Shown in pieces: positions 8,396-52,021 of a stretch of 64,000 nt of DNA. The DNA is from Ascoidea asiatica JCM 7603 (Eukaryota; Fungi; Ascomycota), in the NCBI GenBank assembly GCA_001600695.1, contig BCKQ01000011.1, positions 523,238-587,237 on the forward strand, given 5' to 3'. Position 1 is the first letter of the stretch; each line of letters begins with the position of its first letter. Made by a program: the position numbers and the translations under genes. The notes beneath the pieces were generated by a model. That model searched no databases. It was not told the origin of the DNA and saw only the letters and a list, made by a program, of their open reading frames with translations.

Positions 8396-10168
8396 TTATT
8401 CTTTTTGAGTGAAATATTCATATTCGTAACTTGCATTTATAAGTTCTTTGATATTTTCATCATTATTAGTTTTAGTAAAACATTTTTCAATTAATTCCGG
8501 ATCTCTTGGTTCCAAAATAATATTGAATGCCTTTGGTGCATATGTTTGAGCTTTTGTATCTTTACAATATGTTTTATAATTCAAATCAAGTTTATCATCT
8601 TTTGAGCTTGGTTTAACTTTAAATAATAATAATAATCTTGCAAAAAATGCAAATAATATTCTATTGGATAATAGCATTCCAGGACAAACTCTACCACCTG
8701 CTCCAAATGTGAAATGATATGGAGGTTTATTGAAATTATAATTATTTAAAGAACCATCATTTTCTTTATCTAACCATCTTTCAGGTTTAAATTCTTCAAC
8801 ATCATTTCCAAAATGATTTTTATCATGATTAATTGATTGAATATTTAATATAACTGTTATACCTTTTGGAATATTAACAATTTCACCTTCTTCAGTTTTA
8901 TAATCAAAGCTTTTCATTGTTTTTCTTGGAGGACATAATGGTATAACTGCATAATGTCTTAAAGTTTCTTTAATTAATGAACATATAAATGGGCATTTTT
9001 CTTCAATTGTTATTAAATCCCAAATTTCTTCAATATTTTTAATATTTTCATTATTATAAACTTTTAAAATTTCTTCATATGCTTTATTTTGCCAAATTTC
9101 TCCATTTTTATTAAATGTTAATTGTGCTAATAAAATTGTAGTTATACTTGCTAAAGTTTCAAATCCTCCACTTACTAATGAAACACAAATACTTTTTATA
9201 TCTTCAGTATTTAAATCTTTATTTAAATTATTAACAAAACAAAATTTATTTTCTTTTTCTTTTTCTTTAATATTATTATCAATTGCTTTATTTAATAAAT
9301 CATTTAACCAAACATCTCTTTTATTTGAATAAATTGAAGCTTCTTTTGATCTTTTATTTGGTAAAATTCTAAGTAAAGGTATATAATCAATTAAATTATT
9401 ATTCGTTGATCTATAGGTTGAAATATGAGAAACTAATTCTAAAATTTCATTTAATAAATTTGTTTCAATATTATCAAATCTAGTTGAATAACAAAACATT
9501 GTTGTAACATTTAATGACATTCTTTGACAAAATTTATATGGATTAACCTTATTATTATTAGAAGAATATTTATATAAATCTCTTAAAATTGAAAAAGATT
9601 CAATATTTACAAAATTTTTTAAATCTTTTGAAATTTTTGTTCTTGTCATAAATTTATTAATATTCAATCTTCTTTTTGAACAAGATTTATTCCATGGCAT
9701 TGTACCAACAGTTAAACCTTGAGTAATTGATAAAAATTTATGAAAAGTATAAAAAATTGGTCTATCTATTAAATTGAACTGATTTTTAATTAAAAAATTA
9801 TAACCAGAATTGAAATTATTTAAAATTAAAATTCTTTCATAACCAAATTTAACTTGAACTAAATCTTTATTTTTTGAAATATTTTGTAAAATTGTTGAAT
9901 GATCATTTTTTAATAATTTTAAATGTCCAAAAAATGGTTTAATTCCATTTGGCTGATAAATTCCTTTAATCTTAGAAAAATTTGAACCAAATGCCTGATC
10001 ATATAGTTTATAAATTGAATAAAAAATTAAGAAAATAAAACTTGAATTTAAAATTATTGAATTCAATTCTTTATTATTTATTATATCATTTATTGTATTA
10101 TTATTCTTAAAAGTATTCTCAAGATAATTAGATGAATTCTTAAATTCTTTAATAATTAATTCAATCAT
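8396..10168 (-). CDS. Cytochrome P450, CYP504-like (phenylacetate hydroxylase family)
   Basis: N-terminal TM; RPIFYTFHK..QGLTVGTMPW..C.KRR resembles PhacA; GGFET, ETLR, PERW, FGAGGRVCPG heme motif. Confidence 0.88.
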   Translation of the reverse strand: MIELIIKEFKNSSNYLENTFKNNNTINDIINNKELNSIILNSSFIFLIFYSIYKLYDQAFGSNFSKIKGIYQPNGIKPFFGHLKLLKNDHSTILQNISKNKDLVQVKFGYERILILNNFNSGYNFLIKNQFNLIDRPIFYTFHKFLSITQGLTVGTMPWNKSCSKRRLNINKFMTRTKISKDLKNFVNIESFSILRDLYKYSSNNNKVNPYKFCQRMSLNVTTMFCYSTRFDNIETNLLNEILELVSHISTYRSTNNNLIDYIPLLRILPNKRSKEASIYSNKRDVWLNDLLNKAIDNNIKEKEKENKFCFVNNLNKDLNTEDIKSICVSLVSGGFETLASITTILLAQLTFNKNGEIWQNKAYEEILKVYNNENIKNIEEIWDLITIEEKCPFICSLIKETLRHYAVIPLCPPRKTMKSFDYKTEEGEIVNIPKGITVILNIQSINHDKNHFGNDVEEFKPERWLDKENDGSLNNYNFNKPPYHFTFGAGGRVCPGMLLSNRILFAFFARLLLLFKVKPSSKDDKLDLNYKTYCKDTKAQTYAPKAFNIILEPRDPELIEKCFTKTNNDENIKELINASYEYEYFTQKE

Positions 10169-11520: not shown

Positions 11521-13704
11521 ATGGATTCATCTTCAAACGAAAAAAGCTCTTCTCCAATTCACAAATCTGAAGGTCTCTCACAGGTGCCCAGTAGTGATAT
11601 TGAAAATGATACTGATCTTTACTTAGAAAGAGATATTCTTGATCAAGATCTAGAAAGTGATGAAAGTAGTGAAAGTAATGAAAATGGTGTTACTGATGTA
11701 ACAGGTAAATCTTCTAAACCTAGTAAAAATGGTGATAGTAATCAAAGTGGTCAACTTAAACGTGAAATCAATTTATCCGATATCTTGGATAATGATAATG
11801 ACATTGATCTTGATATTGATATAGATAATAAAATAAATAACAAGAAAAGTAAAAAGGCCAATAAAGAAAATGAAGAAGAAGAAGATGATGATGACGATGA
11901 GAATTTAGATAAATATTGTGTGGAATGTACTGATATGCCAATAGAAGTTTATTGTGAAAATTGTGATGAAAAATTTTGTAGAATTTGTTTTAAATTAATT
12001 CATAATTCTGGTAAAAGAGGTAAACATTCAATAAAAGTAATTGGTAATAATAGTGCTTTAGATAATCTAGATAGGGAAAATCAAAATTTCAATCATAATA
12101 ATATTAATAATAATAATAAAAGTAATAATAATAGCAATAATATTGATGATAATTTTGATAAATATACTCAAGAGGAATTAGCCAAATTGGCTGAACCTTT
12201 AAATTTATCCTCAAACCCAAATAATTCTAAGAATAATAATAACAATGATGATATCACTAACTTTTTGTTAAAAAATATTCAGTCTCAATCTCATTATATA
12301 CCCCTAAGATTAAATGAAGAAGAAAGAAGTTTATTTAAATTATTAGATGCTGCTTTAAATGTTTCCGATTATACAAATAAAATTGATATATATTCATATA
12401 CTTCAAAAGCAAAACGAATAGTAGCTCAATTAAAGGAATTATGTTCAATATTATGTGGTTTAGTAATTTCGAAAAATTTTAAAATTGGATCGGAATTAAT
12501 TTTAAATAAAAATTTCAAAGATAATGAATTTTTTTTCAAAAAAATATTTGAAATTGGTAGAAGATATAAAATTATGAACCCAAATAAATTTAATGATAAT
12601 TTTGGTAAGTTATCTTATATTATAATGGATTCAAGATTACCTGATGTTAAAAACTATATGGAATTTGATTTTTACAAACCAATTTTAAATGTATTTGATT
12701 ATTTGAATTCAAAAGATGATAAAAACATTTTGAATATTTTTAATGATTGTTTATTAATTAATGCCATTAGTGAAATTTCTCCAATTGGTAAAACAAGAAA
12801 TCAAATTCAAAAAGATATTCAAATTAAAGAATATTCAATTGAAAAATTATCAAAAAAATACTCAAATTATGATTCAAATTATGGTTTTTCTTCCGATGAA
12901 ATTAAACAAGCTTTATATTCTTTAGCAGATTATCATTCTTATGTTAATTATAATAGAAAACCAATTGAAAGAATGATAAAAAGATTAAAAAGATTTGATT
13001 ATGATAATTCAAATAATAAAAAAACTATTGATCATTATTCTTTGACAATAAGATCTGGTAGAAATGGTTCAAGATTATCTCATAAGCATAATAAACAATA
13101 TGACTATGTTTTACAATCTTTAAATCTTTGGAGTACTATTCAAAAAGAAATGTTTTATCTCTGGAGTTTAGCTGATGATGATTTATTCAATGAAAGTGTC
13201 ATTTATAAATTAGTTCAAACTGGCCAAGGTTTAAATAGAGTTAAGTCTTGTCCAAATGTTTATAGATTAATGTCAAAAATTTTAAACGAAGTTCAAAAAA
13301 AATCTGGTTTTTGGATAGGTTCTTCTTATATTCATCTTGGTGATACAACTGTACCAAATGCTTTATTTTTTTTAGATAAATATTTACAAGTTCCAAAAAT
13401 CATCACTCCAATTGATAATCTTTTAATTAAACTTGAAGATGATTCAAACAAAGAAAGTTTTTATTATGATAAATTTTTGAAAGAAATGATTCAAAAAGAA
13501 TATAATAGCTTTGATGAATTGGTTTTACATATAACTTCAGGTTTTTTCACTGAGGCATTCAATGGTAGTGGTGGGGAAGATTGGTTTAATGCTGGTAGTT
13601 GTATAGACGGTAGATTAACAAGTACATGGGAATGGGCTAACAGTATTCATAAGAAAGATTACTATAAGTTCTTCTTATTAGCGGGATTTAATGGCTTTAA
13701 TTAA
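11521..13704 (+). CDS. UPF0652/DUF2009 protein with N-terminal B-box zinc finger
   Basis: CVEC..CENC..FCRIC..IH..GKR.KH B-box; YIPLRL..EER, IHLGD..VPNAL.FLDKY, AGSCIDGRLTS.W. Confidence 0.85.
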   Translation: MDSSSNEKSSSPIHKSEGLSQVPSSDIENDTDLYLERDILDQDLESDESSESNENGVTDVTGKSSKPSKNGDSNQSGQLKREINLSDILDNDNDIDLDIDIDNKINNKKSKKANKENEEEEDDDDDENLDKYCVECTDMPIEVYCENCDEKFCRICFKLIHNSGKRGKHSIKVIGNNSALDNLDRENQNFNHNNINNNNKSNNNSNNIDDNFDKYTQEELAKLAEPLNLSSNPNNSKNNNNNDDITNFLLKNIQSQSHYIPLRLNEEERSLFKLLDAALNVSDYTNKIDIYSYTSKAKRIVAQLKELCSILCGLVISKNFKIGSELILNKNFKDNEFFFKKIFEIGRRYKIMNPNKFNDNFGKLSYIIMDSRLPDVKNYMEFDFYKPILNVFDYLNSKDDKNILNIFNDCLLINAISEISPIGKTRNQIQKDIQIKEYSIEKLSKKYSNYDSNYGFSSDEIKQALYSLADYHSYVNYNRKPIERMIKRLKRFDYDNSNNKKTIDHYSLTIRSGRNGSRLSHKHNKQYDYVLQSLNLWSTIQKEMFYLWSLADDDLFNESVIYKLVQTGQGLNRVKSCPNVYRLMSKILNEVQKKSGFWIGSSYIHLGDTTVPNALFFLDKYLQVPKIITPIDNLLIKLEDDSNKESFYYDKFLKEMIQKEYNSFDELVLHITSGFFTEAFNGSGGEDWFNAGSCIDGRLTSTWEWANSIHKKDYYKFFLLAGFNGFN

Positions 13705-15527: not shown

Positions 15528-16988
15528 TCATGTCATAAACTTTTCATAAACTGGTAATGAATTGATTTTAAATATTTCAGCATCTTTCATGACAAAACTT
15601 ATATTTCTCAAAGCCTTGAAGTTTATTCTAGGATCTTCATCAATTGCAATTATATCAGCAGCAAAACCTTCTTGAATTGATCCGAACTTTCTACCGATTA
15701 ATTCTCCTCCACAAGACTCCCAACCTCTATAAGTTCCAGATAATAAAACCTCTTCAACAGGAATTCCAGCTTCAATCATCAATTCCATTTCTCTCACATT
15801 TTCACCATGAGGAAAGGTTCCAGTGTCACCACCACATGCTAATCTTATACCCATATCATATGCTTTTTTAGTTTTTTCTAAAATTATATTCATTTTTGGA
15901 CCAAAAAATAATTCACATACAGCCAAAGTTGGTACTAATATACAATTAATTTTTTTAATTGCCTTTAAACAAATTTCATCAGCCCAATATGCATGTTCGA
16001 TAGTTAAAACACCAGCATTTGCAGCCATTATTGCACTTTCATTACAACCACAATGAGCGGCAACAATTGTTTTATTTCTATTTGCTTCATCTACTAGAGC
16101 ATTCATTTCTTCTTGAGAATATAAAATAATTTCAGGATTTGGAATTGGAGGAGGAAATTTAATTGAACCAATATATGGATGTTGTTGCTTTGGAGGATAT
16201 CTCATAATTTTTTTTCTATAATCAGCATACATTTTAATAATATCAGCACCAGCACCAACTCTTTTTCTTACAGCTTTTCTTACCCCTTCAATACCATCAC
16301 AAGGTTCATAAGTTTCAGGCATTATTGAGCCTCCAACTGAATTTTCTGTTCTTAAATCAAAAGCAGAAGTTGAGGCTAAAATCTTTGTTGCTACATATAA
16401 TCTTGGACCTGGAATTAAACCTCTATTAATTGCATCTCTTACATTGGTATCAGCATCTTGCATACCTTCAGTTCCTAAATCTCTATAAGTTGTATAACCA
16501 GAAAGTAAAGCTGTCCTACAATGATTAACGGCTCTTATTATTCTTTCTGCAAAAGATTCATCTCTTTTTTGTTCAACACTTGATCTTTCTTTATAAGCAT
16601 GCAAAAAAATATGAGCATGAGCATCAACTAAACCAGGTAATACGAATTTACCTCTTAAATCGATATCATTTTTTTTCAAAATCAATTTATCTTTGTCATT
16701 TGAATCTGGACCTAGACCCGAGTTTGGTTCTCTTTTGAAAACTTGTAATATTAAACCAGACAGAGGATCGACAAGAATAGATATATTTTTCTTGAATGTC
16801 TTTGAAATTGGATCAAATAAATTTGAAGTATGAACAAAATATGGTGGTTCTGGTGGAACTACTGGTTTTCCAGCGTAAGTTAAAGAGATATCAGCTTGAA
16901 CACCAGAAGGAGTATTTCCAGGAATAGAACTATCTTTGTTTTCTTCTTTATCTTCTAAATTCAATCCATGAAGATAATCACAACCCAT
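15528..16988 (-). CDS. Metal-dependent amidohydrolase (prolidase-like/ochratoxinase-like subgroup)
   Basis: LPGLVDAHAH (HxH), GYTTYRDLG, GADIIKMY, VAAHC, TIEHA, GGDTG, G.I..GFAADIIA. Confidence 0.9.
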   Translation of the reverse strand: MGCDYLHGLNLEDKEENKDSSIPGNTPSGVQADISLTYAGKPVVPPEPPYFVHTSNLFDPISKTFKKNISILVDPLSGLILQVFKREPNSGLGPDSNDKDKLILKKNDIDLRGKFVLPGLVDAHAHIFLHAYKERSSVEQKRDESFAERIIRAVNHCRTALLSGYTTYRDLGTEGMQDADTNVRDAINRGLIPGPRLYVATKILASTSAFDLRTENSVGGSIMPETYEPCDGIEGVRKAVRKRVGAGADIIKMYADYRKKIMRYPPKQQHPYIGSIKFPPPIPNPEIILYSQEEMNALVDEANRNKTIVAAHCGCNESAIMAANAGVLTIEHAYWADEICLKAIKKINCILVPTLAVCELFFGPKMNIILEKTKKAYDMGIRLACGGDTGTFPHGENVREMELMIEAGIPVEEVLLSGTYRGWESCGGELIGRKFGSIQEGFAADIIAIDEDPRINFKALRNISFVMKDAEIFKINSLPVYEKFMT

Positions 16989-17543
16989 TTCGAAAAAAGA
17001 AAGGAATAATTAAAAATTAATTGAGTAATCGACTAAAAATATAGAGTCAAAGAGTTGTCTCAGAAATACTTTACCATTAATCGCAATAGTTTTGAATAGA
17101 ACTATCAGTGATTAAAAGGAAGAGAAAATGAAAATAAAACCTCTTTCGTTTTTTCCTTCTAGCACATATTCTTCTTTATTTTATTTATTTATTCGATTCT
17201 TTTCTCTTTCTTATGATCTTCTTCGTTCTTCTTTGAGGATTATTACGTACTATTTCTGATCTGGTTTTATTTTCTTTCTGGGTTCTTTCTTCTTTTATTG
17301 AGGCCTACAGCAGAAATGCGATAACTTTCTGTTCTGTGTCGGGTCCGATGACCAATCAGTGCTTCCGACGGGCTTATTGCCTTCCGAGCATAGAAAGAAA
17401 GTGAAAACCTCCAGCTGTAAAGGAATAAATAAAGCATTAAATAAAATAAATCAAATAAAGGATTAATCAAATTAAATAAAAGATATGGTAATAGATACGA
17501 TTTGAATTATACGGTCTATATAATTGTATAAAGATTATGATGA

Positions 17544-18647
17544 TCATAATTTGGACTTGTTAAGGGCGACATTGGGAGTGAGAACTCTTTCGAACTCAAT
17601 TTTATCCACCAATTTAGCTATTTGTTCTGCAGCTCCATATGAGAATGTGTATCCAACACCACTAAATCCATAACAATGTAAAATGTTTTTATCATTTGCA
17701 ATATTATCTTCTCTTTCCAATCTTATTCCACCTTTTCTACTTGGTCTGATTCCAACAACATATCCAAGGATATCTGGATTTTTAGAAACAACATCCGGAG
17801 CTAATTTATTGGCTCTTCTTAATTCATCTTTAATTATATCTAAATCTGGTTTTGGATCTGTATTCCAAGGTTGATGAATTCCTCCACAAATAACATATCC
17901 TTGTAAAGGTCTAGGAATGATATATGTATATTCTTTACCATATCTATAATATAATACGTCTGTTTTAGTTTTAACTTTAACTGTCATTCCTCTATCTGGA
18001 TAACAATTTTTATCCATTATACCATCAATATTCATCGATCCAACTCCAGAAGCATTGATAAAAATTTTTGAATTTGAAAACATTGAATATAATTCTTTTA
18101 AGGATTTGATTTCTTTTCTAATAAATTCACCACCTAGTTTTAAAATTTGATTTTTCATATATAGTAAATAATATGTTGGATCAATAACTAAATCTTCATA
18201 TTCACAAACATATTCAATTTCATCTCCATGTTCTTTACCTTTAATTAAATTTTTAAAATTTTTATTAACATTTGTAAACCAAAATTCTCTTTTTTCTCTT
18301 GAAAAATTTGGTGGAGTTTTTTCATAATGTTCTCTTAATGTAACTTTACAAACTCCTGAAGTTTGAGGATTTTCTTCAAAATCTTTTAAATATCTTCTAT
18401 ATGTAACGGATTCCATATATTTCTCATAATCACTTCTACCTCTAGCTCCATACCACATTGCACCTGCAAAATTCGATGCATACCAAATATCTACATCTCC
18501 TGGTAAATGTTTAGCAATAATTTTTACTTTAAAACCTTTCTCTAATAAGACTCTTGCAATTGTTAATCCAATAATTCCAGCTCCAAGAACAATAATTTCC
18601 TGCTCATAGAATGTTTTTTCATTCAAAGGTTCGATATATCCTCCCAT
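17544..18647 (-). CDS. D-amino-acid oxidase family flavoprotein, peroxisomal
   Basis: GAGIIG FAD motif, INASG, YIIPR, VGIRPSR, HCYGFSGVGY, C-terminal SKL (PTS1). Confidence 0.92.
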   Translation of the reverse strand: MGGYIEPLNEKTFYEQEIIVLGAGIIGLTIARVLLEKGFKVKIIAKHLPGDVDIWYASNFAGAMWYGARGRSDYEKYMESVTYRRYLKDFEENPQTSGVCKVTLREHYEKTPPNFSREKREFWFTNVNKNFKNLIKGKEHGDEIEYVCEYEDLVIDPTYYLLYMKNQILKLGGEFIRKEIKSLKELYSMFSNSKIFINASGVGSMNIDGIMDKNCYPDRGMTVKVKTKTDVLYYRYGKEYTYIIPRPLQGYVICGGIHQPWNTDPKPDLDIIKDELRRANKLAPDVVSKNPDILGYVVGIRPSRKGGIRLEREDNIANDKNILHCYGFSGVGYTFSYGAAEQIAKLVDKIEFERVLTPNVALNKSKL

Positions 18648-18999
18648 TTTTAGTTAATTTATTGCTTTGGTGTTTTTTTAGTGTACTGTTATATAAATAA
18701 ACAATTTTTATTGTGTATGTTTTTCGGATGAATATTTTTTACTTAAAATTGACTAAAATTCTTATTTATTTATAAGAACCCATATGAAATTCATAAATTC
18801 GTTTCATAAATCGTATGTTTTTACCTATTTTTTTTTTTCCCGAAGTATTCGATCAAAACTTTATAAATTTTCTATTTTATTTATTTATTGGTTAATTTTT
18901 TAACCATTGAATTATCTAATTATCTAAAAATTAACCTATTTATGATTATAATTATAATTATACTCTCCATGATTTAAGTATTTTACTGCTTTTAGCTCA

Positions 19000-19049
19000 G
19001 GGGTGGTTATTACCGCAGTCTCGGTTCGAACTGCGGGCTTCTCCACCCC
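19000..19049. promoter_or_regulatory. GC-rich dyad in the divergent DAO/peptidase promoter
   Basis: GGGGTGG-N6-CCGCAGT-N10-ACTGCGG-N6-CCACCCC, symmetric arms and spacing. Confidence 0.5.
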
Positions 19050-19197
19050 CGTTAATTTTGGGAGCATAGGTCAAAACCTCGAAACAGTGAAAATGCTTGG
19101 AAAATGAGCAAAACTGTGCAAATTTACGTTTTCACTAACGATAACTTAAATCTCATAGTGTTTTTGAACCCTTATCAAATCCAGAGAGAGTCAAAAG

Positions 19198-19221
19198 GAT
19201 AAAGATAAAGATAAAGATAGA
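19198..19221 (+). promoter_or_regulatory. Tandem GATA-type sites (GATAAA)3-GATAGA
   Basis: Direct repeats ~180 bp upstream of the peptidase ATG; GATAA cores are typical of nitrogen-regulated fungal promoters. Confidence 0.4.
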
Positions 19222-19395
19222 CATCAATATAATCATAAACATAAAAATAATTTTGAACATGATTAAAAGAATTCGAATGAGAAGAATGAATAAAATGAAA
19301 CGAATTGCTTTCTTTAAATCTCCTATTTATTTATTTACATATTTTATTGATTTTATGGTGTGATTCATATAATTAATTATTTCTCAATTTAAAAA

Positions 19396-20997
19396 ATGTT
19401 TTATTCATCAAAAATACTTTTGGTTATTTTACTTTTCATTCAAATCGGAATATTCAAATTAGTTCTATCAGATCAAATTCCATTAAAATTAGATGAAGAA
19501 AGTAAACCATCACTTGAATCCAATTTATTTCAAAATTCTATTGATATTGACTCGCTAATAGATCATGCTGAAGTTTTATATCAATGTTCTAAAGAATCAA
19601 TTGAAGAATATGGTCATATGAATAGATTAGTTGGTTCAAAGGGGTTTGACTGTACTTTAAACTATTTAATAGAGAAATTTCAAAATGTGAATCAAATTTA
19701 TCCTAATTTTTATAATATTTCAACTCAAGATTTTGAAACTGTTTCTGGAAATATATTTGATTATAAATTAACTTTATTTGATGATATTGATAATAATGGT
19801 AAAGAAATTCAAAATGTTATTCCTTTTTTTCAAACTCCTCCAACCCCAAATAATGGATCTTCAATTAAGAGAAAATTAATTTATGTTGAAAACAATGGTT
19901 GTTCAATGAATGATTATCCAAAAGAATCAAAAGATAATATAGTTATTTTTCAACATGGTTTAGGTTGTTTTTTCGGTGATAAAGCAAATAATGCTGGTAA
20001 AGCTGGTGCTTTAGCTGCAATAATTTATAATAAAGATAAGGGTGAAATGCATAGACCTTTAGGTCCTCCAAGAGAATTTACAGTTCCAACTTTCTCAATT
20101 TTAAAAGAAACTGGTGAAAATATTGTTAGTAAAATTATCAAAGGACAAGATTTATACATTGAAGCAAAATTAAATTCTACAATATTCAATGTTAAAACAA
20201 CTAATTTAATTATAAACTCAAATTTTGGTGATCAAGACAATTGTTTGCTTCTTGGTGCTCATACAGATTCTGTTATTGATGGTCCTGGTATTAATGATGA
20301 TGGTAGTGGATTGATTTCTTTATTACAATTAGCTTTGAATTTGCCAAAGTTCAAATTCAATAATTGTGTAAGGTTTATGTTTTGGTCTGCAGAAGAAGAA
20401 GGTATGATTGGTTCTCAATATTACATCAATAATTTGAATTATAATGAATTAAGAAAAATTAGATTATACTTGAATTTTGACATGATTGCATCTCCGAATT
20501 ATATTTTCCAAATTTTTGATGGTGAACCAATAATAACTGAAATTTTCAAGAAGTTTTATGATTCATTAAATTTAAATTATCAAATCATACCATTTGACAT
20601 GAGATCTGATTATGTTGGTTTTCTTAAGAAAAATATACCATGTGGGGGGATTGCTACTGGTAGTGAAGCTTTAAAAAATAAAGAAGAGTTTGATAAATTT
20701 AATGGTTCAATTGGTGAATGTTTTGATAGTTGTTATCATCAAATTTGTGATGATGTCTCAAATTTGAACAAAATTGCTTGGCTAACAAATACAAAACTTA
20801 TTGCTCATTCAATTTCAACTTTTGCAAATGAATTTGATATAAATTTACCAATTTATGAAGACTGGCTTGACAAACTTTATAATTATACATTAATAATTTT
20901 CCCAATTTTTTCAATATTTATGCTTTGGTCAATAAATAAATTGATAAATACCTCAGCTGAAAACGATGAAAATGTAGGTGGAAAAAAAGATAAATAA
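19396..20997 (+). CDS. M28 aminopeptidase Y-like (PA domain) with signal peptide and C-terminal hydrophobic anchor
   Basis: GAHTDSV, GINDDGSG, AEEEG, NFDMIASPN, CYH metal/catalytic motifs; Ape3-like; tail TLIIFPIFSIFMLW...KKDK. Confidence 0.9.
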   Translation: MFYSSKILLVILLFIQIGIFKLVLSDQIPLKLDEESKPSLESNLFQNSIDIDSLIDHAEVLYQCSKESIEEYGHMNRLVGSKGFDCTLNYLIEKFQNVNQIYPNFYNISTQDFETVSGNIFDYKLTLFDDIDNNGKEIQNVIPFFQTPPTPNNGSSIKRKLIYVENNGCSMNDYPKESKDNIVIFQHGLGCFFGDKANNAGKAGALAAIIYNKDKGEMHRPLGPPREFTVPTFSILKETGENIVSKIIKGQDLYIEAKLNSTIFNVKTTNLIINSNFGDQDNCLLLGAHTDSVIDGPGINDDGSGLISLLQLALNLPKFKFNNCVRFMFWSAEEEGMIGSQYYINNLNYNELRKIRLYLNFDMIASPNYIFQIFDGEPIITEIFKKFYDSLNLNYQIIPFDMRSDYVGFLKKNIPCGGIATGSEALKNKEEFDKFNGSIGECFDSCYHQICDDVSNLNKIAWLTNTKLIAHSISTFANEFDINLPIYEDWLDKLYNYTLIIFPIFSIFMLWSINKLINTSAENDENVGGKKDK

Positions 20998-21127
20998 ATA
21001 AAAAATAAATACTTTTTCAAATATAGAAAATTGATTACTTAATTAAGAATATAAAGATTTCATTTTATTTTATTTTATATTATATTATATATTTATATAT
21101 TATATAAAAAGTAATATTGATAATAGT

Positions 21128-22732
21128 TTATGGCTTATACGATTCTCTTTCTATTGCAACATTTTTAATTAAAAATTCCTCATTTCTTGGAATGAAAAAA
21201 CAATTAAATTCATTAGGAGGTCTATTATGATTACCATGAGAATAACCAAATTCAATAGGATCTAAATTCATTGGATTTGATTCATCTTTTTCAATTTTAA
21301 AGTTGATTAAAATTCTAATAAGCATAACATATAAAATATGATTGGAAATTAAAAAAGCAGGGCAAATTCTTGCACCAATACCGTAAGAAGCATGAGGAGC
21401 ACCATTAACAGTTTTTAAATTGGGATCTAACCATCTCTCTGGACGGAAATTTGAACCATCAATCCAATATTCATCATCATGATTAAAAGCTTCAGAATTT
21501 AAATAAAAAGTAGTACCTTTTGGTATGGTTGCATTATCAATAATTATATCTCTTAAGGAACAATGAGGATTTGCATAAGGAGCAACAGTAAAATATCTTA
21601 AACTTTCTTTATATAAAGCAACAATATATGGAATATTTTCTTGTGGATCAAAACAATCATTCCAAGCTTTGTTTAAATCATTATTATAATATTTTAAGAT
21701 TTCATTATAAGCGGTCTGTTGAATTTTTTGACCCTTTTCAGAAGCTAAATAACCTAAAGCAGCAGATAAAGTTGAACTTATAGTTTCTGAACCTCCTTGT
21801 AACATACCCCTACAAACAGCATCTAATTCTTCTTGATTTAGTTTTGTTTCTTTATTAGACATTAAAGTCGAAGCAATACAATTTTTTTCAATACCATTAT
21901 CTAGATCATTTTTTAGATTTAAAAATAATTTATTTTGTAGATCTTTTCTTTTTTGATTAGAAATTTGAGCTTTATGAATATTTGATTTTACAATTGGGGA
22001 AAGTTTTAAAATCGGTATAAAATTAGCCCAATTTGAAGTTGCGTTTCTTAATTTTGAGACATTTTCAGTTTGAGTTATAAATTCTTTATAAAAAGGATCA
22101 CTTGTTGATTTAAATCTAGTACCATATGTAATATTAAAGGAAAAGTTCATTGTAACTTGTTGTATAAAAGAAATTGGAAATAAAGATTTTTTACCAATCT
22201 CACCATTTTCATAAAAATTAGAAATTAAATTTGCAGTTTCATAATGTAAATAATAATCATGATTTTTCCAAGTTGGTTTACCAACAGATTTTATTGAAGC
22301 AATTCTCATTCTTCTCAAAGAATCACTCATTGGTCTATTACCAACATCAATACCAAAACTTTCATTAAATACAGGATGAACAGGTCTTGAAGATAAAGCA
22401 GCAGTATTGATACCATTTGATAATTTTGCAATTGATTTAACAGAATTTGCAACTACAACTCTTTGATTTCCTAAACGTATTTGAAAAATTGGATAATTAT
22501 ATTTTTTTGACCATTCAGTAAAAATTGTTGCATCATGTTTATTAAATTTTCCTCCTAGATAAGGTAAATGACCAACAATTAATTTTGAACCTGGAATTTG
22601 TGGTAAATTTTTAATTTTACTTTGACAAGAGTTTAGTTGAATAAAACCTAAAATAAATATTGTTAATACTAATATAGCAATTGTAGTTGGATTTAAATTT
22701 GACAAGAATTGGTTAAGTATTGGTTCGATCAT
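21128..22732 (-). CDS. Cytochrome P450, divergent CYP504-related
   Basis: N-terminal TM, QIRLGNQRVVVANS, LSSRP, GGSET, ESLR, PERW, YGIGARICPA. Confidence 0.88.
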   Translation of the reverse strand: MIEPILNQFLSNLNPTTIAILVLTIFILGFIQLNSCQSKIKNLPQIPGSKLIVGHLPYLGGKFNKHDATIFTEWSKKYNYPIFQIRLGNQRVVVANSVKSIAKLSNGINTAALSSRPVHPVFNESFGIDVGNRPMSDSLRRMRIASIKSVGKPTWKNHDYYLHYETANLISNFYENGEIGKKSLFPISFIQQVTMNFSFNITYGTRFKSTSDPFYKEFITQTENVSKLRNATSNWANFIPILKLSPIVKSNIHKAQISNQKRKDLQNKLFLNLKNDLDNGIEKNCIASTLMSNKETKLNQEELDAVCRGMLQGGSETISSTLSAALGYLASEKGQKIQQTAYNEILKYYNNDLNKAWNDCFDPQENIPYIVALYKESLRYFTVAPYANPHCSLRDIIIDNATIPKGTTFYLNSEAFNHDDEYWIDGSNFRPERWLDPNLKTVNGAPHASYGIGARICPAFLISNHILYVMLIRILINFKIEKDESNPMNLDPIEFGYSHGNHNRPPNEFNCFFIPRNEEFLIKNVAIERESYKP

Positions 22733-23512
22733 TTTGAAAGAAAAATAAAAATGAATCTAGAGTATTTGTTATATTCACTATATTTTTTTACCTATTTTTC
22801 TATCTATTTTTCTATAGATTCGTTTTACTCCTGATTATTAGAGAAAAATATTATCTAGAACCTCAAGTATTAAAATACAGTAAATGGTGGAAAACTTTAT
22901 ATTTATATATCATATGAAGGATAATTATCTTGTAAAGTAATATATTATCGGGTCTTTTTAATAAATAATTTTAATCTTTTTTTCAGAATCTAGTCATTTT
23001 AGAATATGACCTCAGATTAACTGAAATATAGTTTTTGAGAATAATTGAACTTTTAAAAGTGATTTATTCGTAATTTCAAGTCGATAATTGGCGATGAGCA
23101 AATGAAGTAGCTAAAAAAGAATATATCAGCTACCAAGCTACAAAATACACCTTTTCTCGTTTGGAGCTTCGAGCAGCGAAAGTCTTGGGAAGTGAAGCAC
23201 GCAAAACTCCATCTAATACAGCGCGGAGCAAGGAATCCAGCGCCGGCAACGACCGTTGAACCTTAATTGGCAGAAGATTAAATTTAATCAACGCGACATG
23301 AGATTAGCTTTAATTAATGGAAGTTAAATTGGATTAATTGATTAAGAATTAATTGAAATAAATTAATTGAAAAAAAATATTCAATTAAACTTTATTAGAG
23401 AAACCATTTAAGAAGAGATTCAATTCCGGATTCTTATTCAGAGTACAAAAAGATTGCTGAGAGGTTTACAAACTATTATAAGAACTAATAAGAACTACTA
23501 TAATATTAAAGA

Positions 23513-24286
23513 ATGACAAACAGAATATTTATCACCGGTGGTGGTTTAGGAATTGGCTATAAGACAATAGAATTTTTAATAAATGATTACGAAGACACAA
23601 AGATAGTTACTTTGACTTTGGATGTTGGCAAAGATTTGACTCAATTGAAAGAATTACATCCAGATAGAATATTTATTGTTAAAGGAGATGTCACTGTTGA
23701 GGAAGATATGAAAAAAGCAATTAAAGAATGTGAGTTAAAATTAGGTGGTATAGATACTTTAATTGTAAGTGCAGGAATCGAAGGTGATTTTAATAGAATA
23801 TTTGATATGTCTTATGAACATTTTAAAAAAGTAATGGATATAAATGTATCTGGTGTATTTTTAACAATCAAATCTTCTTTACCATATTTAAGAAAAAGTA
23901 AAGTTGGTAAAGCAATAGTTGTTTCTTCAACAGCAGGTAGAGCTTGTTATGCTGGTAGAGTGGCTTATACTTCTTCAAAAGCTGCTCTTAATAGAGTTAT
24001 TGATACTTTAGCTTGGGAAGAAAAAAATTTAAAAATATTTGGTGTATTTCCTGGTTTAACTAAAACTCCAATGTCAGATAAATTAATAAATGGTGATTAT
24101 GATCATATAATGTATCCAGAAGAAACTCAAAGATATCATAATTGGATTAAAAACGGTCAAGTTGATCCTCCAAATTGGTGTGCAGATGCAATAGCTAGAA
24201 TTTCAACAGGTAAATCTCCTGGTTTGCCTGGTAAAAGTTGTAGTTATTCAGAACATGTTCCTGAGTTAAAATTAGGCTATTGGTAA
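23513..24286 (+). CDS. Classical short-chain dehydrogenase/reductase
   Basis: TGGGLGIG, GDVT, SAG, VSS, YTSSK catalytic motif. Confidence 0.92.
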   Translation: MTNRIFITGGGLGIGYKTIEFLINDYEDTKIVTLTLDVGKDLTQLKELHPDRIFIVKGDVTVEEDMKKAIKECELKLGGIDTLIVSAGIEGDFNRIFDMSYEHFKKVMDINVSGVFLTIKSSLPYLRKSKVGKAIVVSSTAGRACYAGRVAYTSSKAALNRVIDTLAWEEKNLKIFGVFPGLTKTPMSDKLINGDYDHIMYPEETQRYHNWIKNGQVDPPNWCADAIARISTGKSPGLPGKSCSYSEHVPELKLGYW

Positions 24287-24396
24287 TTGAATATAATCTT
24301 TTTTATTTTTCATAGTAAATTTATTTGTAAATAGCAATGTTTTTAGTCAATGATAAAGATGAGCAATGTAAAAATAAACATAAATAAAAAAACAAT

Positions 24397-24470
24397 TGAT
24401 TTTGCCCAGGATGGAACTGGGGACGTTCTGCGTGTTAAGCAGATGCCATAACCAACTAGACCACAAAACC
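24397..24470 (-). tRNA. tRNA-Val(AAC), T-loop variant TTCCATC
   Basis: GGTTTTGTGGTCTAGTTGGTTATGGCA-TCTGC-TT-AAC-AC-GCAGA-ACGTCCCCAGTTCCATCCTGGGCAAAATCA. Confidence 0.92.
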
Positions 24471-24839
24471 AACATTAATTTTTAAATATCATTATTTCCA
24501 CTAATACCTACAATATATAAAAGGTAAAAATGTTTTGCGGACTTTTCCATTTCCTTATCTCAAAATAATCGGAGAAATAATAATATGTAATAAGATTTTG
24601 GAGTTTTAGTTGCTGGAATATTTTTGAGGAAATTTCTAAGATTGATTAAAAATTTATTTCAAGTTTGTTGATTACTATTATTTGTTGATTAATGGTTTAA
24701 CTTATTTAATACTACTAAAGACCTTGTTTTCTTCTTTTTTCTGTTTTAGTTTTTTGGTTGTTTCATTTTAAATTATTATTATTATTATTATTATTATCAT
24801 CTTCATAGTCTCATTATTATTATTGATAATTCAAAAGAA

Positions 24840-25754
24840 ATGTCGATTAGTTTGAAAAAAGAATTCAAATTGAACTCTGGTGGAACAATTCCAAGTATTG
24901 GAATAGGAACTTGGCAAAGTGATGGAAATTCAGTTTGTTATGCTTTACAACATGGATTTCGTCATATTGATGGAGCATGGGCATATGGAAATTTAGAAGA
25001 TGTATCGAAAGGAATTAAAGATTCTAAAATTCCAAGAGATTTAATTTTTTATACAGATAAATTACCAAATACTTGGCATAGTAGATCAAAAGAATGTTTT
25101 TCAAAAACATTCGAAAAATTAGGTGGTCTAGACAATATTAAATATATTGATTTATGGTTAATGCATTGGCCAACACCTTTAAATCCTAAAGGTAATAATG
25201 ATAAAACTCCAAGAAAAAAAGATGGTAGTGTTGATTTTGAAGAGAATTGGGATTTTATTAAAACTTGGAAATCAATGGAAAATATTTATGAAAATAATAA
25301 AGATAAATTAAAATCAATTGGTGTTGCAAATTTTGATATTGAACATTTAGAATTATTATTAAAAAATTGTAAAATTATACCTTCAGTTAATCAAGTTGAA
25401 TTACATCCAAATAATCCACAACCTGAATTGAAAAAATATTGTGATAGTAAAGGAATTCAATTAGTTGCATATTCACCATTAGGATCAGTTGGATCCGATT
25501 TAATGAAAAATGAAAAAATTAAAGAAATTGCAATTAGAAATAATAGATCAGTTGCTCAATGTTTAATTAGTTGGGGTATTTATCAAGGATGGGCTGTAAT
25601 TCCAAAATCTTCATCTCCTGAAAGAATCCAAGAAAACTTTGACGTTAAACCACTATCAAAAGAAGATTATGATTTAATAAGTAAAATTGGTAGTGAAAAA
25701 CATAAAAGATATATAAGACCAGATTGGTATATTTTTGATGACAAAGATGATTAA
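24840..25754 (+). CDS. Aldo-keto reductase (Gcy1/Ypr1/Ara1-like)
   Basis: GIGTW, HIDGAWAY, DKL, LMHWP tetrad; SIGVANF, NQVELHP, AYSPLG, IPKS. Confidence 0.93.
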   Translation: MSISLKKEFKLNSGGTIPSIGIGTWQSDGNSVCYALQHGFRHIDGAWAYGNLEDVSKGIKDSKIPRDLIFYTDKLPNTWHSRSKECFSKTFEKLGGLDNIKYIDLWLMHWPTPLNPKGNNDKTPRKKDGSVDFEENWDFIKTWKSMENIYENNKDKLKSIGVANFDIEHLELLLKNCKIIPSVNQVELHPNNPQPELKKYCDSKGIQLVAYSPLGSVGSDLMKNEKIKEIAIRNNRSVAQCLISWGIYQGWAVIPKSSSPERIQENFDVKPLSKEDYDLISKIGSEKHKRYIRPDWYIFDDKDD

Positions 25755-26380
25755 TCAATTGATTAGACATGACAAATCAGTAACTAATGAATCTGAAGTA
25801 ACCACCATTTAAATAAATAATCATTAAATAATTAATCATTAAAATATTCGAATATAATACTGGGAGTTTGTACCTGCATATAAACGCACCGAAGGCAACC
25901 AGTCCAACGGCTTCAAACCCGTTGAAACGGAAAGGTTCGTTAACAAGTTCGTCAGAGGTTGTTTTTTTCGGAAGTGTTCTTTAAAAAACATTTGTGGCGC
26001 AGGGGGTTCGCTAGTATCGGAAATGTTCCGGCGCGGATAGACCCGAGCGGAGAACTGCGACAAGAGGAAGAAAATCTTCTTGAAATCGAGTTTGATCTTG
26101 GTCTTTATTTAAGTTCAGCGTTGATTATTAGTAATTAAGGAGTAAATAAGGATTCTATGATTTCGATAAGGAATCTTTGCTGAGAATTAATCTTACAAAC
26201 TTTAAAGATATTAATATGGTAATAAATATTCTTGTATTTCTTAATAGCAATATTTCAAAAATCATATAATGTTCTCTTTTTTTTTGTATATACAATATAT
26301 AAGATATTAATTGTCATTGGTATATCAATTATATAGTAAAATAATCAAATAACATCAGTAACAATATTTTATATATCAAT

Positions 26381-27673
26381 ATGAGTAAAGATTTTAGTAA
26401 ATTAAGTCCAAAGACTCAAGAAATTTATGATTTATATCATGATCATATATCTTGTGGATTTTCTCCTTTACCTGTTGCAATTATTAAAGCTAAAGGTTCA
26501 AAATTATGGGATATTGATAATAAAGAATATATTGATTTTTTATCAATGTTTGCAGTTACAAATATGGGACATTCTCATCCAAAAATTGTTAAAGCTGCTC
26601 AATTAGCTTTAGAAAATTCTGCAATTATAAATACATCAATTTTAAGTCCATCATTAGCAAAATTTTCTTTAAAATTATGTAAATTTTTAAATTATAATGA
26701 TGGAAAATTTGTACCAATGACAAGTGGTGCAGAAGCTGCTGATTCTGCTGTTAAAATTGCAAGAAAATGGGGTTATGAAATCAAAAAAATTCCAATTAAT
26801 GAAGCTATTATACTTACAGCTACATCTTGTTATCATGGTTTAACAGTTTCAACACATTCTATGGCTTCAAAACCAAATCCAATTTTTGGTCCATATGTTA
26901 ATAATGTTGGTTCAACATTACCTGATGGTGAAATTTCAAAATTTGGTGATATTAAAAGTTTAAAATTAATTATAGAAAAATATCATAAAAATATTGCAGG
27001 TTTTATGGTTGAAGCAATTCAAGGTTCCGCTGGTATAGTATGTCCTCCGGATGATTATATTAAAGAAGCTTTCAATCTTTGTCAAAAATTTAATATATTA
27101 TTTATTGCAGATGAAGTTCAAACTGGTTTTGGTAGAGCTGGTTATAAATTAGCTTGTTTTAAATATAATATAAAACCCGATTTAATCTGTCTTGGTAAGG
27201 CAATTTCTGGGGGATTAATTCCATTTTCAGGTGTTCTTGGTAAAAAACAAGTAATGGATATTCTTAAAGCTAATGAATTAGGTTCAACAATGGCTGGTAA
27301 TCCACCAGCAACTGAAGCTGGAATGGCTGCAATTGATGTATTTGAAGAAGAAAAATTAGATGAAAGGTCTTTAAAATTAGGTGAAATATTAGTTAAAGAA
27401 ATGGAAAAAATAAATCCTCCACATTTTATTGGTTTTGATGGTCAAGCGTTATTTAGATCTGTTTTACTTGATGGTAAAATTAATCCAAGAAGATTAGTGG
27501 CATTATGTGCTCAAAGAGGACTAATTTGTAATGCTACATCTAGTGGTAGAATTAGATTATGTCCAGCTCTTACAATTCCTGAAGAAGAATTGCTTAAAGG
27601 AATTGAAATATTTTGTAATTGTTTGAAAGAAATTGATGAAATAAAAGGTGATATTATCGGAGAATATATATAA
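26381..27673 (+). CDS. Class-III PLP aminotransferase, divergent ornithine-aminotransferase paralogue
   Basis: SGAEA, EAIQG, FIADEVQTGFGR, LGKAISGG (PLP Lys), GSTMAGNP; substrate residues differ from CAR2/OAT. Confidence 0.9.
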   Translation: MSKDFSKLSPKTQEIYDLYHDHISCGFSPLPVAIIKAKGSKLWDIDNKEYIDFLSMFAVTNMGHSHPKIVKAAQLALENSAIINTSILSPSLAKFSLKLCKFLNYNDGKFVPMTSGAEAADSAVKIARKWGYEIKKIPINEAIILTATSCYHGLTVSTHSMASKPNPIFGPYVNNVGSTLPDGEISKFGDIKSLKLIIEKYHKNIAGFMVEAIQGSAGIVCPPDDYIKEAFNLCQKFNILFIADEVQTGFGRAGYKLACFKYNIKPDLICLGKAISGGLIPFSGVLGKKQVMDILKANELGSTMAGNPPATEAGMAAIDVFEEEKLDERSLKLGEILVKEMEKINPPHFIGFDGQALFRSVLLDGKINPRRLVALCAQRGLICNATSSGRIRLCPALTIPEEELLKGIEIFCNCLKEIDEIKGDIIGEYI

Positions 27674-28964: not shown

Positions 28965-30173
28965 ATGCTTAGAGTCATTTCAAATTCTTTATCAAATCCT
29001 ATTCTTTTGAATAGAACAATAGTTCCATCAACCATATCTTTAATTAGATTATCTTCAAATATTTCTCATATTTCTTCTATTTCTCAAAATAATTTAAGAA
29101 GATTCAATTCTTCATATTCAATACCTAAAACTCAAAAAGCATATATATTTAACCATCAGACTGGAAAATTACAATTTGTTAATGATTATCCAGTTCCAAA
29201 ATTAAATTCAAATCAAGTTTTATTAAAAACTAAAGCTGTTGGTTTATGTCATTCAGATTTAAGTATATTAGAAGGTTTAAGTTTACCTTTTAAAAAATCC
29301 TTTATTATGGGTCATGAAATTTGTGGTGAAATAGTCGATACTAATTTACCAGATTCTAATTTATCATTAAAAAAAATATTTGAAATTGGTAAAACATATA
29401 CTGTTCAAGGTGTTAATCCTTGTGGAGAATGTTCAAGTTGTTTAAAAGGTTTTGAAACAACTTGTACAGGAAATCAAGGTATTTGGTATGGTATTGGTAG
29501 AGATGGTGGTTATGGTGAATATTTACCTGTTGATATTAAACATCTTATAAAAGTTCCAGAATCTTTACAAAATAGTCCAGAAGTTTGTTCAATTGCAACA
29601 GATGCTGTTTTAACTCCATATCATGCTTTGAAAAAAATTAAAAATTTAAATGGAATGCATAAAATCTTAATAATTGGTTTAGGAGGTTTAGGTTTAAATG
29701 CTGTTCAATTAGCTAAAAAAGCTTTTGGTGCTTATGTTATTTGTTCTGATTTTAAAGAAAGTCAAAGATTAAAAGCTAAAGAATTTGGTGCTGATGAAGT
29801 TTATGAAACTTTACCAACTTCATCATTAGATGTAGATTCTGTTCTTGATTTTGTTTCAATTTCTCCAACTGTTTCAACTGGTATATTTCATCTTAAATCT
29901 CAAGGTCAATTAATCCTAGTTGGTATTAATCCAAAAGGATTTGCTTTATCAATAAAAGAAATTACTCAAGTTTTAGCAAAAGAATTAATAATACAATCTA
30001 CTTTTTGGGGAACTAAACAGGATCAAATTGAAGTATTGGATCTAATAGGAAATAAAAAAATTAATCCAAAATATAAAACTTTCTCTTTATTCAAAGACTT
30101 GAAAGCTCAAATGGATGTAATGGCTGAAGGTAAAATGGTTGATAGAGCTGTATTCATTCCTAAGTCTGAATAA
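28965..30173 (+). CDS. Zn-dependent secondary alcohol dehydrogenase/carbonyl reductase (MDR) with probable mitochondrial presequence
   Basis: GLCHSD, GHE, CGECSSC...C, TDAVLTPY (Asp ligand as in Candida secondary ADHs), GLGGLG; ~50-aa Ser/Arg-rich acid-free N-terminus. Confidence 0.9.
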   Translation: MLRVISNSLSNPILLNRTIVPSTISLIRLSSNISHISSISQNNLRRFNSSYSIPKTQKAYIFNHQTGKLQFVNDYPVPKLNSNQVLLKTKAVGLCHSDLSILEGLSLPFKKSFIMGHEICGEIVDTNLPDSNLSLKKIFEIGKTYTVQGVNPCGECSSCLKGFETTCTGNQGIWYGIGRDGGYGEYLPVDIKHLIKVPESLQNSPEVCSIATDAVLTPYHALKKIKNLNGMHKILIIGLGGLGLNAVQLAKKAFGAYVICSDFKESQRLKAKEFGADEVYETLPTSSLDVDSVLDFVSISPTVSTGIFHLKSQGQLILVGINPKGFALSIKEITQVLAKELIIQSTFWGTKQDQIEVLDLIGNKKINPKYKTFSLFKDLKAQMDVMAEGKMVDRAVFIPKSE

Positions 30174-51109: not shown

Positions 51110-52021
51110 ATGTCTTCCCAATCTAATACTATAACTAAAACTGGGCTTCCTACATCAGTTCCAGCATACTTGCCAACTAAGGATAGTCCCTTATATGCCG
51201 ATAGAGAATTTTACACCAAAATTGGTAATGCTGAAAAAAAATTAATTTTAAAAGAGACAGTTCCAATTAGATCAGGTAGGGCCTGGAAAGTACCAAAAGG
51301 TCATATTTGTAGAATTGTTGCTCCAGAAGGTCCTCAGGTTGGTGATTTAAATATTTTCAACTACAATAATCCAAGAGAAAGATTATGGGCTGCAAGAACA
51401 AGACAATTACATTCGGCTCATGTATCTAAATTTGATAGACTATGGTCAAACTTACCATATTTAAGACCTTTAGTTACAATAACTGGTGATTCAATAGATT
51501 ATGGTTTAGATAATCAAGGAGGTAGATGTCATGATTTATTAGGAACTAGATGTGATCCATATGTTAGAAATCTTTTATCTGGTATTGATTTTGACTTTCA
51601 TTGCCATTCCAATTTAACCAGAGCCATTTTACCTTATGGTTTAACTGAATTTGATGTACATGATGTTTTAAATGTGTTTCAGCTAACAGGTTTGAATGAT
51701 AAAGATCAATATTTTATGGAGCCTTGTCCCGCTAAAGCTGGCGATTATTTTGAATTTTTTGCAGAAACAGATTTACTATGTGCTCTATCTGCTTGTCCAG
51801 GAGGCGATTTATCTAAATGGGGATGGGAAGAAGGAGATAATTCAGAAAGTACAACTGAAGATGCGAAAGAAGATCTCGACATGGTTGAATGTTGTAGACC
51901 CTTAGAGTACCAGGTATATGAAATTGTCGATAAACAATTATTAAAAACTTGGAAAGAGCCACAACCTTCAAAATATAAAGGAAATCATGGCCTTAAGTAT
52001 CCTGTTTTTGAAAAACCTTAA
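51110..52021 (+). CDS. DUF1989 / urea-carboxylase-associated family protein
   Basis: GPQVGDLN, HDLLGTRCDPY, HCHSNL, HDVLNVFQ, FFAETDLLCALSACPGGD. Confidence 0.9.
   Translation: MSSQSNTITKTGLPTSVPAYLPTKDSPLYADREFYTKIGNAEKKLILKETVPIRSGRAWKVPKGHICRIVAPEGPQVGDLNIFNYNNPRERLWAARTRQLHSAHVSKFDRLWSNLPYLRPLVTITGDSIDYGLDNQGGRCHDLLGTRCDPYVRNLLSGIDFDFHCHSNLTRAILPYGLTEFDVHDVLNVFQLTGLNDKDQYFMEPCPAKAGDYFEFFAETDLLCALSACPGGDLSKWGWEEGDNSESTTEDAKEDLDMVECCRPLEYQVYEIVDKQLLKTWKEPQPSKYKGNHGLKYPVFEKP

Follow-up and report, generated by a model that had tools for sequence, protein, structure and literature searches.

Several nitrogen-catabolic gene clusters have been described in fungi, including hxn (nicotinate) and prn (proline) of Aspergillus nidulans, FDB1/FDB2 (benzoxazolinone) of Fusarium and DAL of yeast. 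In each of these, the genes for using one nitrogen compound lie together and encode hydrolases and oxidoreductases as well as transporters and pathway-specific regulators. To our knowledge none of them brings together a cytochrome P450 of the CYP504 clan, an amidohydrolase of the COG1228 group and an aminotransferase that descends from ornithine aminotransferase (OAT). Budding yeasts have few conserved metabolic clusters. A cluster with this combination was analyzed in the yeast Ascoidea asiatica. The window, meaning the whole stretch of DNA analyzed, was 64 kb of contig C11 (523238-587237) from an AT-rich genome of 20.3 Mb in 71 contigs. CTG codons were nearly absent by codon count.

The co-location of these genes is beyond chance and the locus is a conserved metabolic gene cluster. 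It probably degrades a nitrogen-containing ring or amide compound. The existence of a conserved regulon is considered highly probable, and the best explanation of the window is that it is the largest remnant of an ancient catabolic regulon of fungi that has come apart in this yeast. A limited search of the open-access literature turned up no account of the cluster or its genes, and automated cluster catalogues may hold it without a name. The cluster is real and conserved, apparently undescribed, and of a known general kind.

Gene content

An initial annotation had proposed an undescribed catabolic cluster of seven enzyme genes. The seven open reading frames (ORFs) were present at the coordinates below with the Pfam families it had named, and their catalytic motifs were intact. 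ESM Atlas contributed nothing beyond family names. The seven genes were contiguous, apart from a tRNA-Val gene between the short-chain dehydrogenase/reductase (SDR) and aldo-keto reductase (AKR) genes, and the two divergent pairs were as first described. The gene list itself was incomplete. It had overlooked a second P450, two Zn2Cys6 regulators (TF1 and TF2), a C45 hydrolase, a major facilitator superfamily (MFS) transporter and a second SDR (SDR2), the last five on other contigs. The cluster extends left past DUF2009 and HEM12 to this second P450, 5 kb left of the amidohydrolase gene. The features of the window were as follows.

8396-10168, minus strand: P450b, CYP504-clan P450, yeast-type cluster member (43-52% identical to clustered P450s of Pichia, Ogataea, Meyerozyma and Priceomyces; clade SH-aLRT 100)
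15528-16988, minus strand: AMH, amidohydrolase (Amidohydro_1), core member, COG1228-type (ochratoxinase/prolidase-like) binuclear amidohydrolase (Pfam, PDB and fold matches)
17544-18647, minus strand: DAO, D-amino acid oxidase paralogue, not a conserved member (Pfam, PDB match)
19396-20997, plus strand: M28, aminopeptidase-Y-like PA+M28 peptidase, not a conserved member (Pfam)
21128-22732, minus strand: P450a, CYP504-clan P450, black-yeast-type cluster member (Pfam p450, clade support 99)
23244-23260, no strand: CGG-N6-CCG site with TTGAA after it, in the divergent promoter of P450a and SDR (motif scan)
23513-24286, plus strand: window SDR, classical, adh_short (Pfam)
24396-24471, minus strand: tRNA-Val(AAC), inside the cluster (ARAGORN)
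24840-25754, plus strand: AKR (Aldo_ket_red), conserved member (Pfam; best match of clustered AKRs in the set of own-genome AKRs compared)
26034-26045, no strand: CGG-N6-CCG site, AT promoter (motif scan)
26381-27673, plus strand: AT, OAT-derived class III aminotransferase (Aminotran_3), core member (Pfam, residue changes)

The partners on other contigs formed two mini-clusters.

C15:309166-313928: TF1 (48% identical to Priceomyces), divergent from a C45 hydrolase (43% to Cladophialophora)
C16:71495-78190: MFS (50% to Meyerozyma), SDR2 (68%) and TF2 (33% to Priceomyces)

Together the window and the two mini-clusters make up a gene set of the Meyerozyma type, with AT, AKR and P450a in addition. 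An FAD oxidase and a haloacid dehalogenase (HAD) hydrolase, found at some related loci, were not found in the Ascoidea asiatica genome with single-protein queries. To the left of TF1/C45 (C15:295001-301700) lay tandem, partly fragmented transporter-like ORFs with similar N-termini.

Conservation in other fungi

Related loci were reached through P450a matches and through look-ups anchored on AT and on AMH. An AMH orthologue and a CYP504-clan P450 lay within 10 kb of each other in all nine AMH loci retrieved, and this was the sole pair found in all nine. The loci represented eight genera and two subphyla, including both yeasts and filamentous fungi. Gene order was shuffled among them. The nine loci were as follows.

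Cladophialophora immunda: TF, TF, C45, AMH, AKR, AT, P450, amidase, MFS
Exophiala/Elasticomyces: a run similar to that of Cladophialophora immunda
Pichia californica: P450, two TFs, AT, AMH, AKR, FAD oxidase, HAD
Second Pichia-like yeast (L021:10001-18824): cluster with two AT copies
Ogataea angusta: permeases, AT, AKR, AMH, HAD, FAD oxidase, P450, TF
Phialocephala subalpina: TF, P450, AMH, SDR, HAD, FAD oxidase, AT
Fusarium kuroshium: HAD, TFs, C45, AT, DHDPS-family lyase, SDR, P450, AMH
Meyerozyma (AMH-anchored): MFS, C45, TF, P450, SDR, TF, AMH
Priceomyces carsonii (AMH-anchored): AMH with P450, without AT nearby

Because gene order varies among genera, the cluster is not plain inherited synteny, and its recurrence in shuffled order in eight other genera means that co-location exceeds chance. 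Besides the P450 (nine loci), TF1 was found in at least eight of the nine, AT in seven and TF2 in at least six. AKR, C45 and HAD were each present in four, and SDR2 and FAD oxidase in three. AKR (L011, L017, L021, L024) and SDR2 (L020, L107, L145) were mutually exclusive. AT was clustered in five of the seven AT-anchored loci, namely those of Pichia californica, the second Pichia-like yeast, Ogataea, Phialocephala and Fusarium. A second AT was seen in Cladophialophora (P0037), about ten gene numbers off its cluster.

The conserved core comprises AMH, a CYP504-clan P450, the OAT-derived AT, a carbonyl oxidoreductase in the form of AKR or SDR2, and two Ppr1-type Zn2Cys6 proteins. Variable partners were the C45 hydrolase, an amidase or M20 deacylase, and an FAD amine oxidase with a type-II HAD hydrolase; transport was represented by an ACS/DAL5-type MFS or an amino-acid permease. 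In none of the loci did a backbone gene (nonribosomal peptide synthetase, polyketide synthase, terpene or CDP synthase) lie within 10 kb. Aldehyde dehydrogenases and ring-cleavage dioxygenases were likewise missing from all of ten loci.

Orthologues of AMH, P450a, P450b, AT and AKR were co-located in distant genomes. DAO, M28 and the window SDR gave no tblastn match (E<1e-5) in any related locus within ±10 kb. The initial annotation was therefore borne out as to a conserved, apparently undescribed cluster, its orthologues being co-located in nine loci of other fungi, but membership differs from its seven genes, and the proposal that all seven make up the unit is not supported. Its D-amino-acid route rests on genes that are not conserved in the related clusters. 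Gene trees, which it had suggested for detecting co-transfer, placed the yeast AMH and AT in yeast clades. Recent transfer of the block was rejected on these grounds and on GC3 values like those of the neighbours.

Promoter sites and regulators

Fifty-one CGG pair spacings were scored in 47 cluster promoters against a null of block dinucleotide shuffles. The inverted pair CGG-N6-CCG, a spacing first spotted in the same data, was the only one of the 51 to stand out, with 16 sites in 13 of the 47 promoters compared to 2.0 ± 1.4 in the shuffles. In 27 control promoters there was one site (1.4 expected). The Fusarium locus, retrieved later and held out, gave modest support, with five sites in four promoters compared to 1.3 expected. 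A cruder shuffle was used there, giving p ~0.015 for this spacing and p ~0.04 for two others. The 64-kb window contained exactly two CGG-N6-CCG sites (23244 and 26034), both in cluster promoters. The extended 17-bp site had three exact matches in 20.3 Mb, at window position 23244, in the C16 MFS/SDR2 promoter and at C11:72042. This last copy (C11:72042-72058) is nearly identical to that at 23244, and the adjoining gene may join the regulon. The sequence CCGTTGAA alone was dropped as a candidate operator as it was not conserved across species. The GC-rich patches containing CGG that had been noted in the promoters were present, but they are not specific to the cluster. Maximum GC in 60 bp was 0.50-0.67 in control promoters (mitochondrial carrier, HEM12, DOA1) compared to 0.30-0.63 in cluster promoters, and the patches were dropped as evidence.

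Regulators of the Ppr1/UaY type bind CGG-N6-CCG and act in pyrimidine synthesis or purine catabolism. The cluster motif has the spacing of the Ppr1 site. The DNA-binding domain of TF1 aligned without gaps to that of Ppr1 (PDB 1pyi, E 3.5e-6), and the Ppr1 linker length, from the last Cys to the dimerization helix, was kept in the readable TF1 and TF2 sequences. The cluster genes are likely co-regulated, with CGG-N6-CCG as the candidate operator. The window SDR is possibly co-regulated with P450a through their common promoter.

Amidohydrolase

AMH is a single-copy gene, with one match in the genome, and is 55-63% identical to its clustered orthologues. PDB and fold matches were ADH3, ochratoxinase and Cc2672 at 23-30% identity. 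The predicted model had a pLDDT of 86.8 and matched with Foldseek probability 1.0 and a TM-score of ~0.7 by query and up to 0.89 by target. The metal ligands H124, H126, K252, H312, H332 and D388 were invariant in 62 of 62 homologues. The HxH motif, carbamylated Lys, two His, catalytic Asp and TIM barrel of the model identify AMH as a predicted COG1228 binuclear amidohydrolase. It shares the fold and all metal ligands with ochratoxinase, ADH3, Cc2672 and the prolidases, but belongs to a fungal subfamily that lacks the GGH-loop His and has an Arg-rich insert after K252. This His, presumably the binder of the C-terminal carboxylate in the carboxypeptidase relatives, was Y, F or I in all 62 homologues. 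Y257 and R263 were invariant and lie in a longer specificity loop.

A GTDB scan with the AMH alignment found bacterial relatives of only 31-37% identity, and no operon clue was obtained from them. In a quick tree, intronless AMH homologues from JGI nested among fungal sequences. Homologues from the basidiomycete Kwoniella (P0065, P0089, P0146) nested in Pezizomycotina beside Scytalidium in a quick unrooted tree, for which transfer is possible.

Aminotransferase

A canonical CAR2 with its ornithine-binding residues was located on contig C5; AT was 38% identical to it and is thus a second class III aminotransferase of this genome. AT scored 378.1 against the TIGR01885 cut-off of 378.4 and its homologues are annotated as OAT. 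In OAT, R180 and Y55 hold ornithine in place, and R413 is screened by E235 (PMC9136103). AT retains the OAT fold and the lysine that holds the pyridoxal phosphate, but F27, L154 and S216 replace Y55, R180 and E235. Across 37 homologues, where aligned, F stood in place of Y55, no sequence had Arg at the R180 position, and E235 was replaced by S or A, with a single W; K292 and R413 were unchanged. Putrescine aminotransferase also lacks the Arg, and its loss goes with amine substrates free of a carboxylate (PMC4244111). As judged from these residues, AT is unlikely to be an ornithine enzyme, and its substrate is most likely a primary amine without the far alpha-amino-acid group of ornithine.

Two other identities were rejected. 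AT is not CAR2, the true copy being on C5 and the ornithine residues being replaced. It is not a class III amino-acid racemase/epimerase either, as the E235-equivalent is not acidic. Isoleucine 2-epimerase has an acidic residue at this position. A metagenome scan with the AT alignment gave only matches of 33-39%, which resembled ordinary OATs. In Kuraishia capsulata (L016:5420-20897) the AT orthologue belonged to another cluster, whose other genes encode two proteins like sarcosine/pipecolate oxidases, permeases, a START-like protein and a Zn2Cys6 protein; the AMH match of this yeast was on a contig of another length.

P450s and reductases

All trees were quick trees with midpoint rooting. The closest matches of P450a (44-45%) were in Cladophialophora and Exophiala/Elasticomyces, both within AMH and AT clusters. 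P450a grouped with the black-yeast cluster enzymes (99) and P450b with those of yeasts (SH-aLRT 100). The two groups were sister clades (98), separate from a CYP501-like copy on C5 and from PhacB-annotated proteins, to which P450a was 32-34% identical; verified PhacA was outside the tree. Membership of the CYP504 phenylacetate/hydroxyphenylacetate hydroxylases would call for grouping with PhacA/PhacB or for an identity above 40%. Ascoidea asiatica was the only sampled locus with both P450 types. No yeast relative was present among the P450a matches, and transfer of P450a is for this reason possible.

Of the own-genome AKRs compared, the window AKR was the closest to the clustered AKRs (Pichia 51%, Ogataea 48%, Cladophialophora 42%), ahead of a GCY1-like paralogue on C3. 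The tree ruled out the AKRs of C15 and of Priceomyces as its orthologues. The window SDR had intact TGxxxGxG and YxxxK motifs, and its paralogues were at most 32% identical. It was rejected as the SDR of the related clusters, with no match in those loci.

DAO and M28

DAO aligned to Rhodotorula DAO (PDB 1c0i, E 4.6e-37) with the FAD-binding motif and active-site Tyr and Arg present. It ends in SKL and is predicted to be peroxisomal. Six paralogues were found, one at 49% identity; of the seven DAO-like genes in the genome one has an internal TAA stop (C4:1099928). M28 has an N-terminal signal, a C-terminal hydrophobic stretch and a KKxx end, with a 47% paralogue on C19, and on these features is classed as a secretory-pathway aminopeptidase-Y paralogue. 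The shared DAO/M28 promoter has no CGG-N6-CCG and carries seven GATAA, the highest number among the promoters counted, which may reflect nitrogen-catabolite control apart from the cluster operator. A GC-rich dyad and a run of GATAAA repeats were seen there (19000-19220). DAO and M28 are probably mere neighbors of the cluster.

Neighboring genes

A DUF2009/B-box protein is encoded at 11521-13704, between P450b and HEM12. To the right of the cluster (28965-30173) lies a zinc alcohol dehydrogenase gene with a presequence-like N-terminus, without the operator and without an orthologue in the related clusters. ORFs with a VWA domain (44922-47375) and a DUF1989 domain (51110-52021) follow. A run of minus-strand ORFs at 53720-60730 shows strong positive GC skew, and its 403-aa ORF had no Pfam match.

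Proposed pathway

The route from a cyclic amine through a lactam to ring opening and transamination is the best single guess from the encoded enzymes. TF1 and TF2 would bind CGG-N6-CCG and induce the genes on the substrate. The substrate would be an N-heterocycle or a cyclic amine. It possibly enters the cell as an N-acyl conjugate, from which C45, the amidase or M20 would first release it. The P450 would hydroxylate the ring carbon beside the nitrogen, and its product would be a cyclic amide or be oxidized to one by AKR or SDR. AMH would hydrolyze this amide. AT would then remove the primary amino group from an amine lacking the alpha-amino-acid end of ornithine. Candidate substrates are saturated cyclic amines of the pyrrolidine/piperidine type; candidate heteroaryl substrates are histamine/imidazole-4-acetate and tryptamine/indole-3-acetate.

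The presence of AMH and P450 in all nine loci is as expected if one makes the substrate of the other, and the mutual exclusivity of AKR and SDR2 is as expected for one redox step. The N-heterocycle route fits best because the AMH and P450 pair is invariant, AKR and SDR2 alternate, AT is of amine type and the transporters are of uptake type, and because no backbone synthase, aldehyde dehydrogenase or ring-cleavage dioxygenase occurs at the loci.

Several points weigh against the route or the regulon behind it. The 11 loci were sampled from top matches and some are related (two Pichia, two black yeasts). CGG-N6-CCG was absent from the AMH, AKR and P450b promoters in the window and from the cluster promoters of Pichia, Ogataea and Priceomyces. 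No AT lay near AMH in Meyerozyma or Priceomyces, and AT was away from AMH in Kuraishia (L016) and in yeast locus L013, the two AT-anchored loci where the cluster was missing. Y257 and R263 of AMH could bind a carboxylate, and a ring substrate is not proven. Characterized CYP504 enzymes hydroxylate arylacetic acids, not amines (PMC6723986).

With these points considered, the assignment of N-heterocycle or cyclic-amine chemistry from sequence is tentative, though close to evenly balanced. The regulon and this chemistry taken together are somewhat doubtful. A complete, undescribed pathway opening an N-heterocycle via a lactam, with its own P450 lineage, a fungal amidohydrolase subfamily, an amine-type AT and a Ppr1-like pair of regulators, is about as doubtful and is offered as a possibility. 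If it is true, a lactam pathway cluster has been kept in yeasts and filamentous fungi and is here split over three contigs with its operator kept, and yeast CYP504 enzymes would have a first function.

Alternative explanations

It is rather unlikely that the same regulon acts on a linear N-acyl amide of an arylalkylamine or arylacetic acid, such as phenolamides, N-acyl-tyramine or -dopamine, or phenylacetyl amides. AMH, C45 and the amidase would cut the amide, AT would deaminate, AKR or SDR would reduce the aldehyde and the P450 would ring-hydroxylate the arylacetate in the manner of PhacA/PhacB. As many as three kinds of amide hydrolase are found together in the loci, the solved relatives of AMH cut linear N-acyl amino acids, and the AT pocket suits carboxylate-free amines. 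Most of the fungi that carry the cluster live in association with plants, wood or insects. However, the aldehyde dehydrogenase or ring-cleavage dioxygenase needed for use of a hydroxylated arylacetate was found in none of the ten loci, and the FAD oxidase and HAD module is left unexplained. Arylacetate hydroxylation is known CYP504 chemistry (PMC6723986), but the cluster P450s fall outside the PhacB-annotated clade.

An N-substituted or cyclic amino acid as substrate of the same regulon (pipecolate, hydroxyproline, azetidine-2-carboxylate, nicotianamine-like or Amadori compounds) is distinctly unlikely. AT would transaminate alpha-amino acids via an unshielded R413, with DAO standing in for the FAD oxidase. 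The top NCBIfam matches of the FAD oxidase include, below cut-off, the L-pipecolate oxidase AmaA, and FAD oxidase and HAD were not found in the genome whereas DAO is present. The Kuraishia AT is beside two sarcosine-oxidase-like genes and amino-acid permeases, and the Fusarium locus adds a DHDPS-family lyase. Members of the HAD family open azetidine-2-carboxylate (PMC8016842), but the cluster HAD had no PDB match named azetidine-carboxylate hydrolase. Moreover such substrates would offer AMH an amide only if the P450 created it, and DAO is peroxisomal with no CGG-N6-CCG in its promoter.

That the cluster makes or detoxifies a small nitrogenous metabolite, instead of serving nutrient use, is improbable. 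P450, AKR, SDR and aminotransferase are common tailoring enzymes and two pathway-specific regulators are present, but no locus had a backbone synthase within 10 kb, the transporters belong to uptake families (ACS/DAL5 MFS, amino-acid permeases) and hydrolases predominate. A single pathway of all seven first-listed genes for N-acyl or D-amino-acid conjugates is very improbable, as contiguity, the site-bearing promoter common to the window SDR and P450a, and the GATAA-rich DAO/M28 promoter are set against the lack of DAO, M28 and window-SDR orthologues in nine related loci, differing predicted compartments, and close DAO and M28 paralogues elsewhere.

Comparison with known systems

A 2019 survey listed yeast CYP501/CYP504 without reported function (PMC6723986). 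The cluster offers these enzymes a pathway context in the form of likely partners, regulators and an operator. Ogataea, Pichia and Meyerozyma are tractable hosts which carry it, and in the Ascoidea asiatica genome it persists in three pieces with a common putative operator. The AT subfamily, listed in databases as ornithine aminotransferase without the ornithine-binding residues, is possibly a new amine transaminase.

The phacA and phacB genes of A. nidulans (CYP504A/B, phenylacetate to homogentisate) encode P450s of the same CYP501/504 group. The cluster P450s differ in forming two clades of their own with respect to PhacB-annotated proteins, named PhacA being outside the tree. The cluster also lacks homogentisate-pathway genes, its partners being amide hydrolases and an aminotransferase. 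Ppr1/UaY-type regulons share the site spacing and the linker of the DNA-binding domain. Their targets differ, those of the cluster being neither URA nor purine-catabolic genes, and the cluster encodes two regulator paralogues. The proposed route runs parallel in its logic to cyclic-amine degradation with CYP151 in Mycobacterium and to the Hin histamine pathway of Pseudomonas putida, in that a ring is hydroxylated, a C-N bond is cut and an amino group is transaminated. These bacterial routes serve as mechanistic models by analogy only, the bacterial AMH relatives found being just 31-37% identical.

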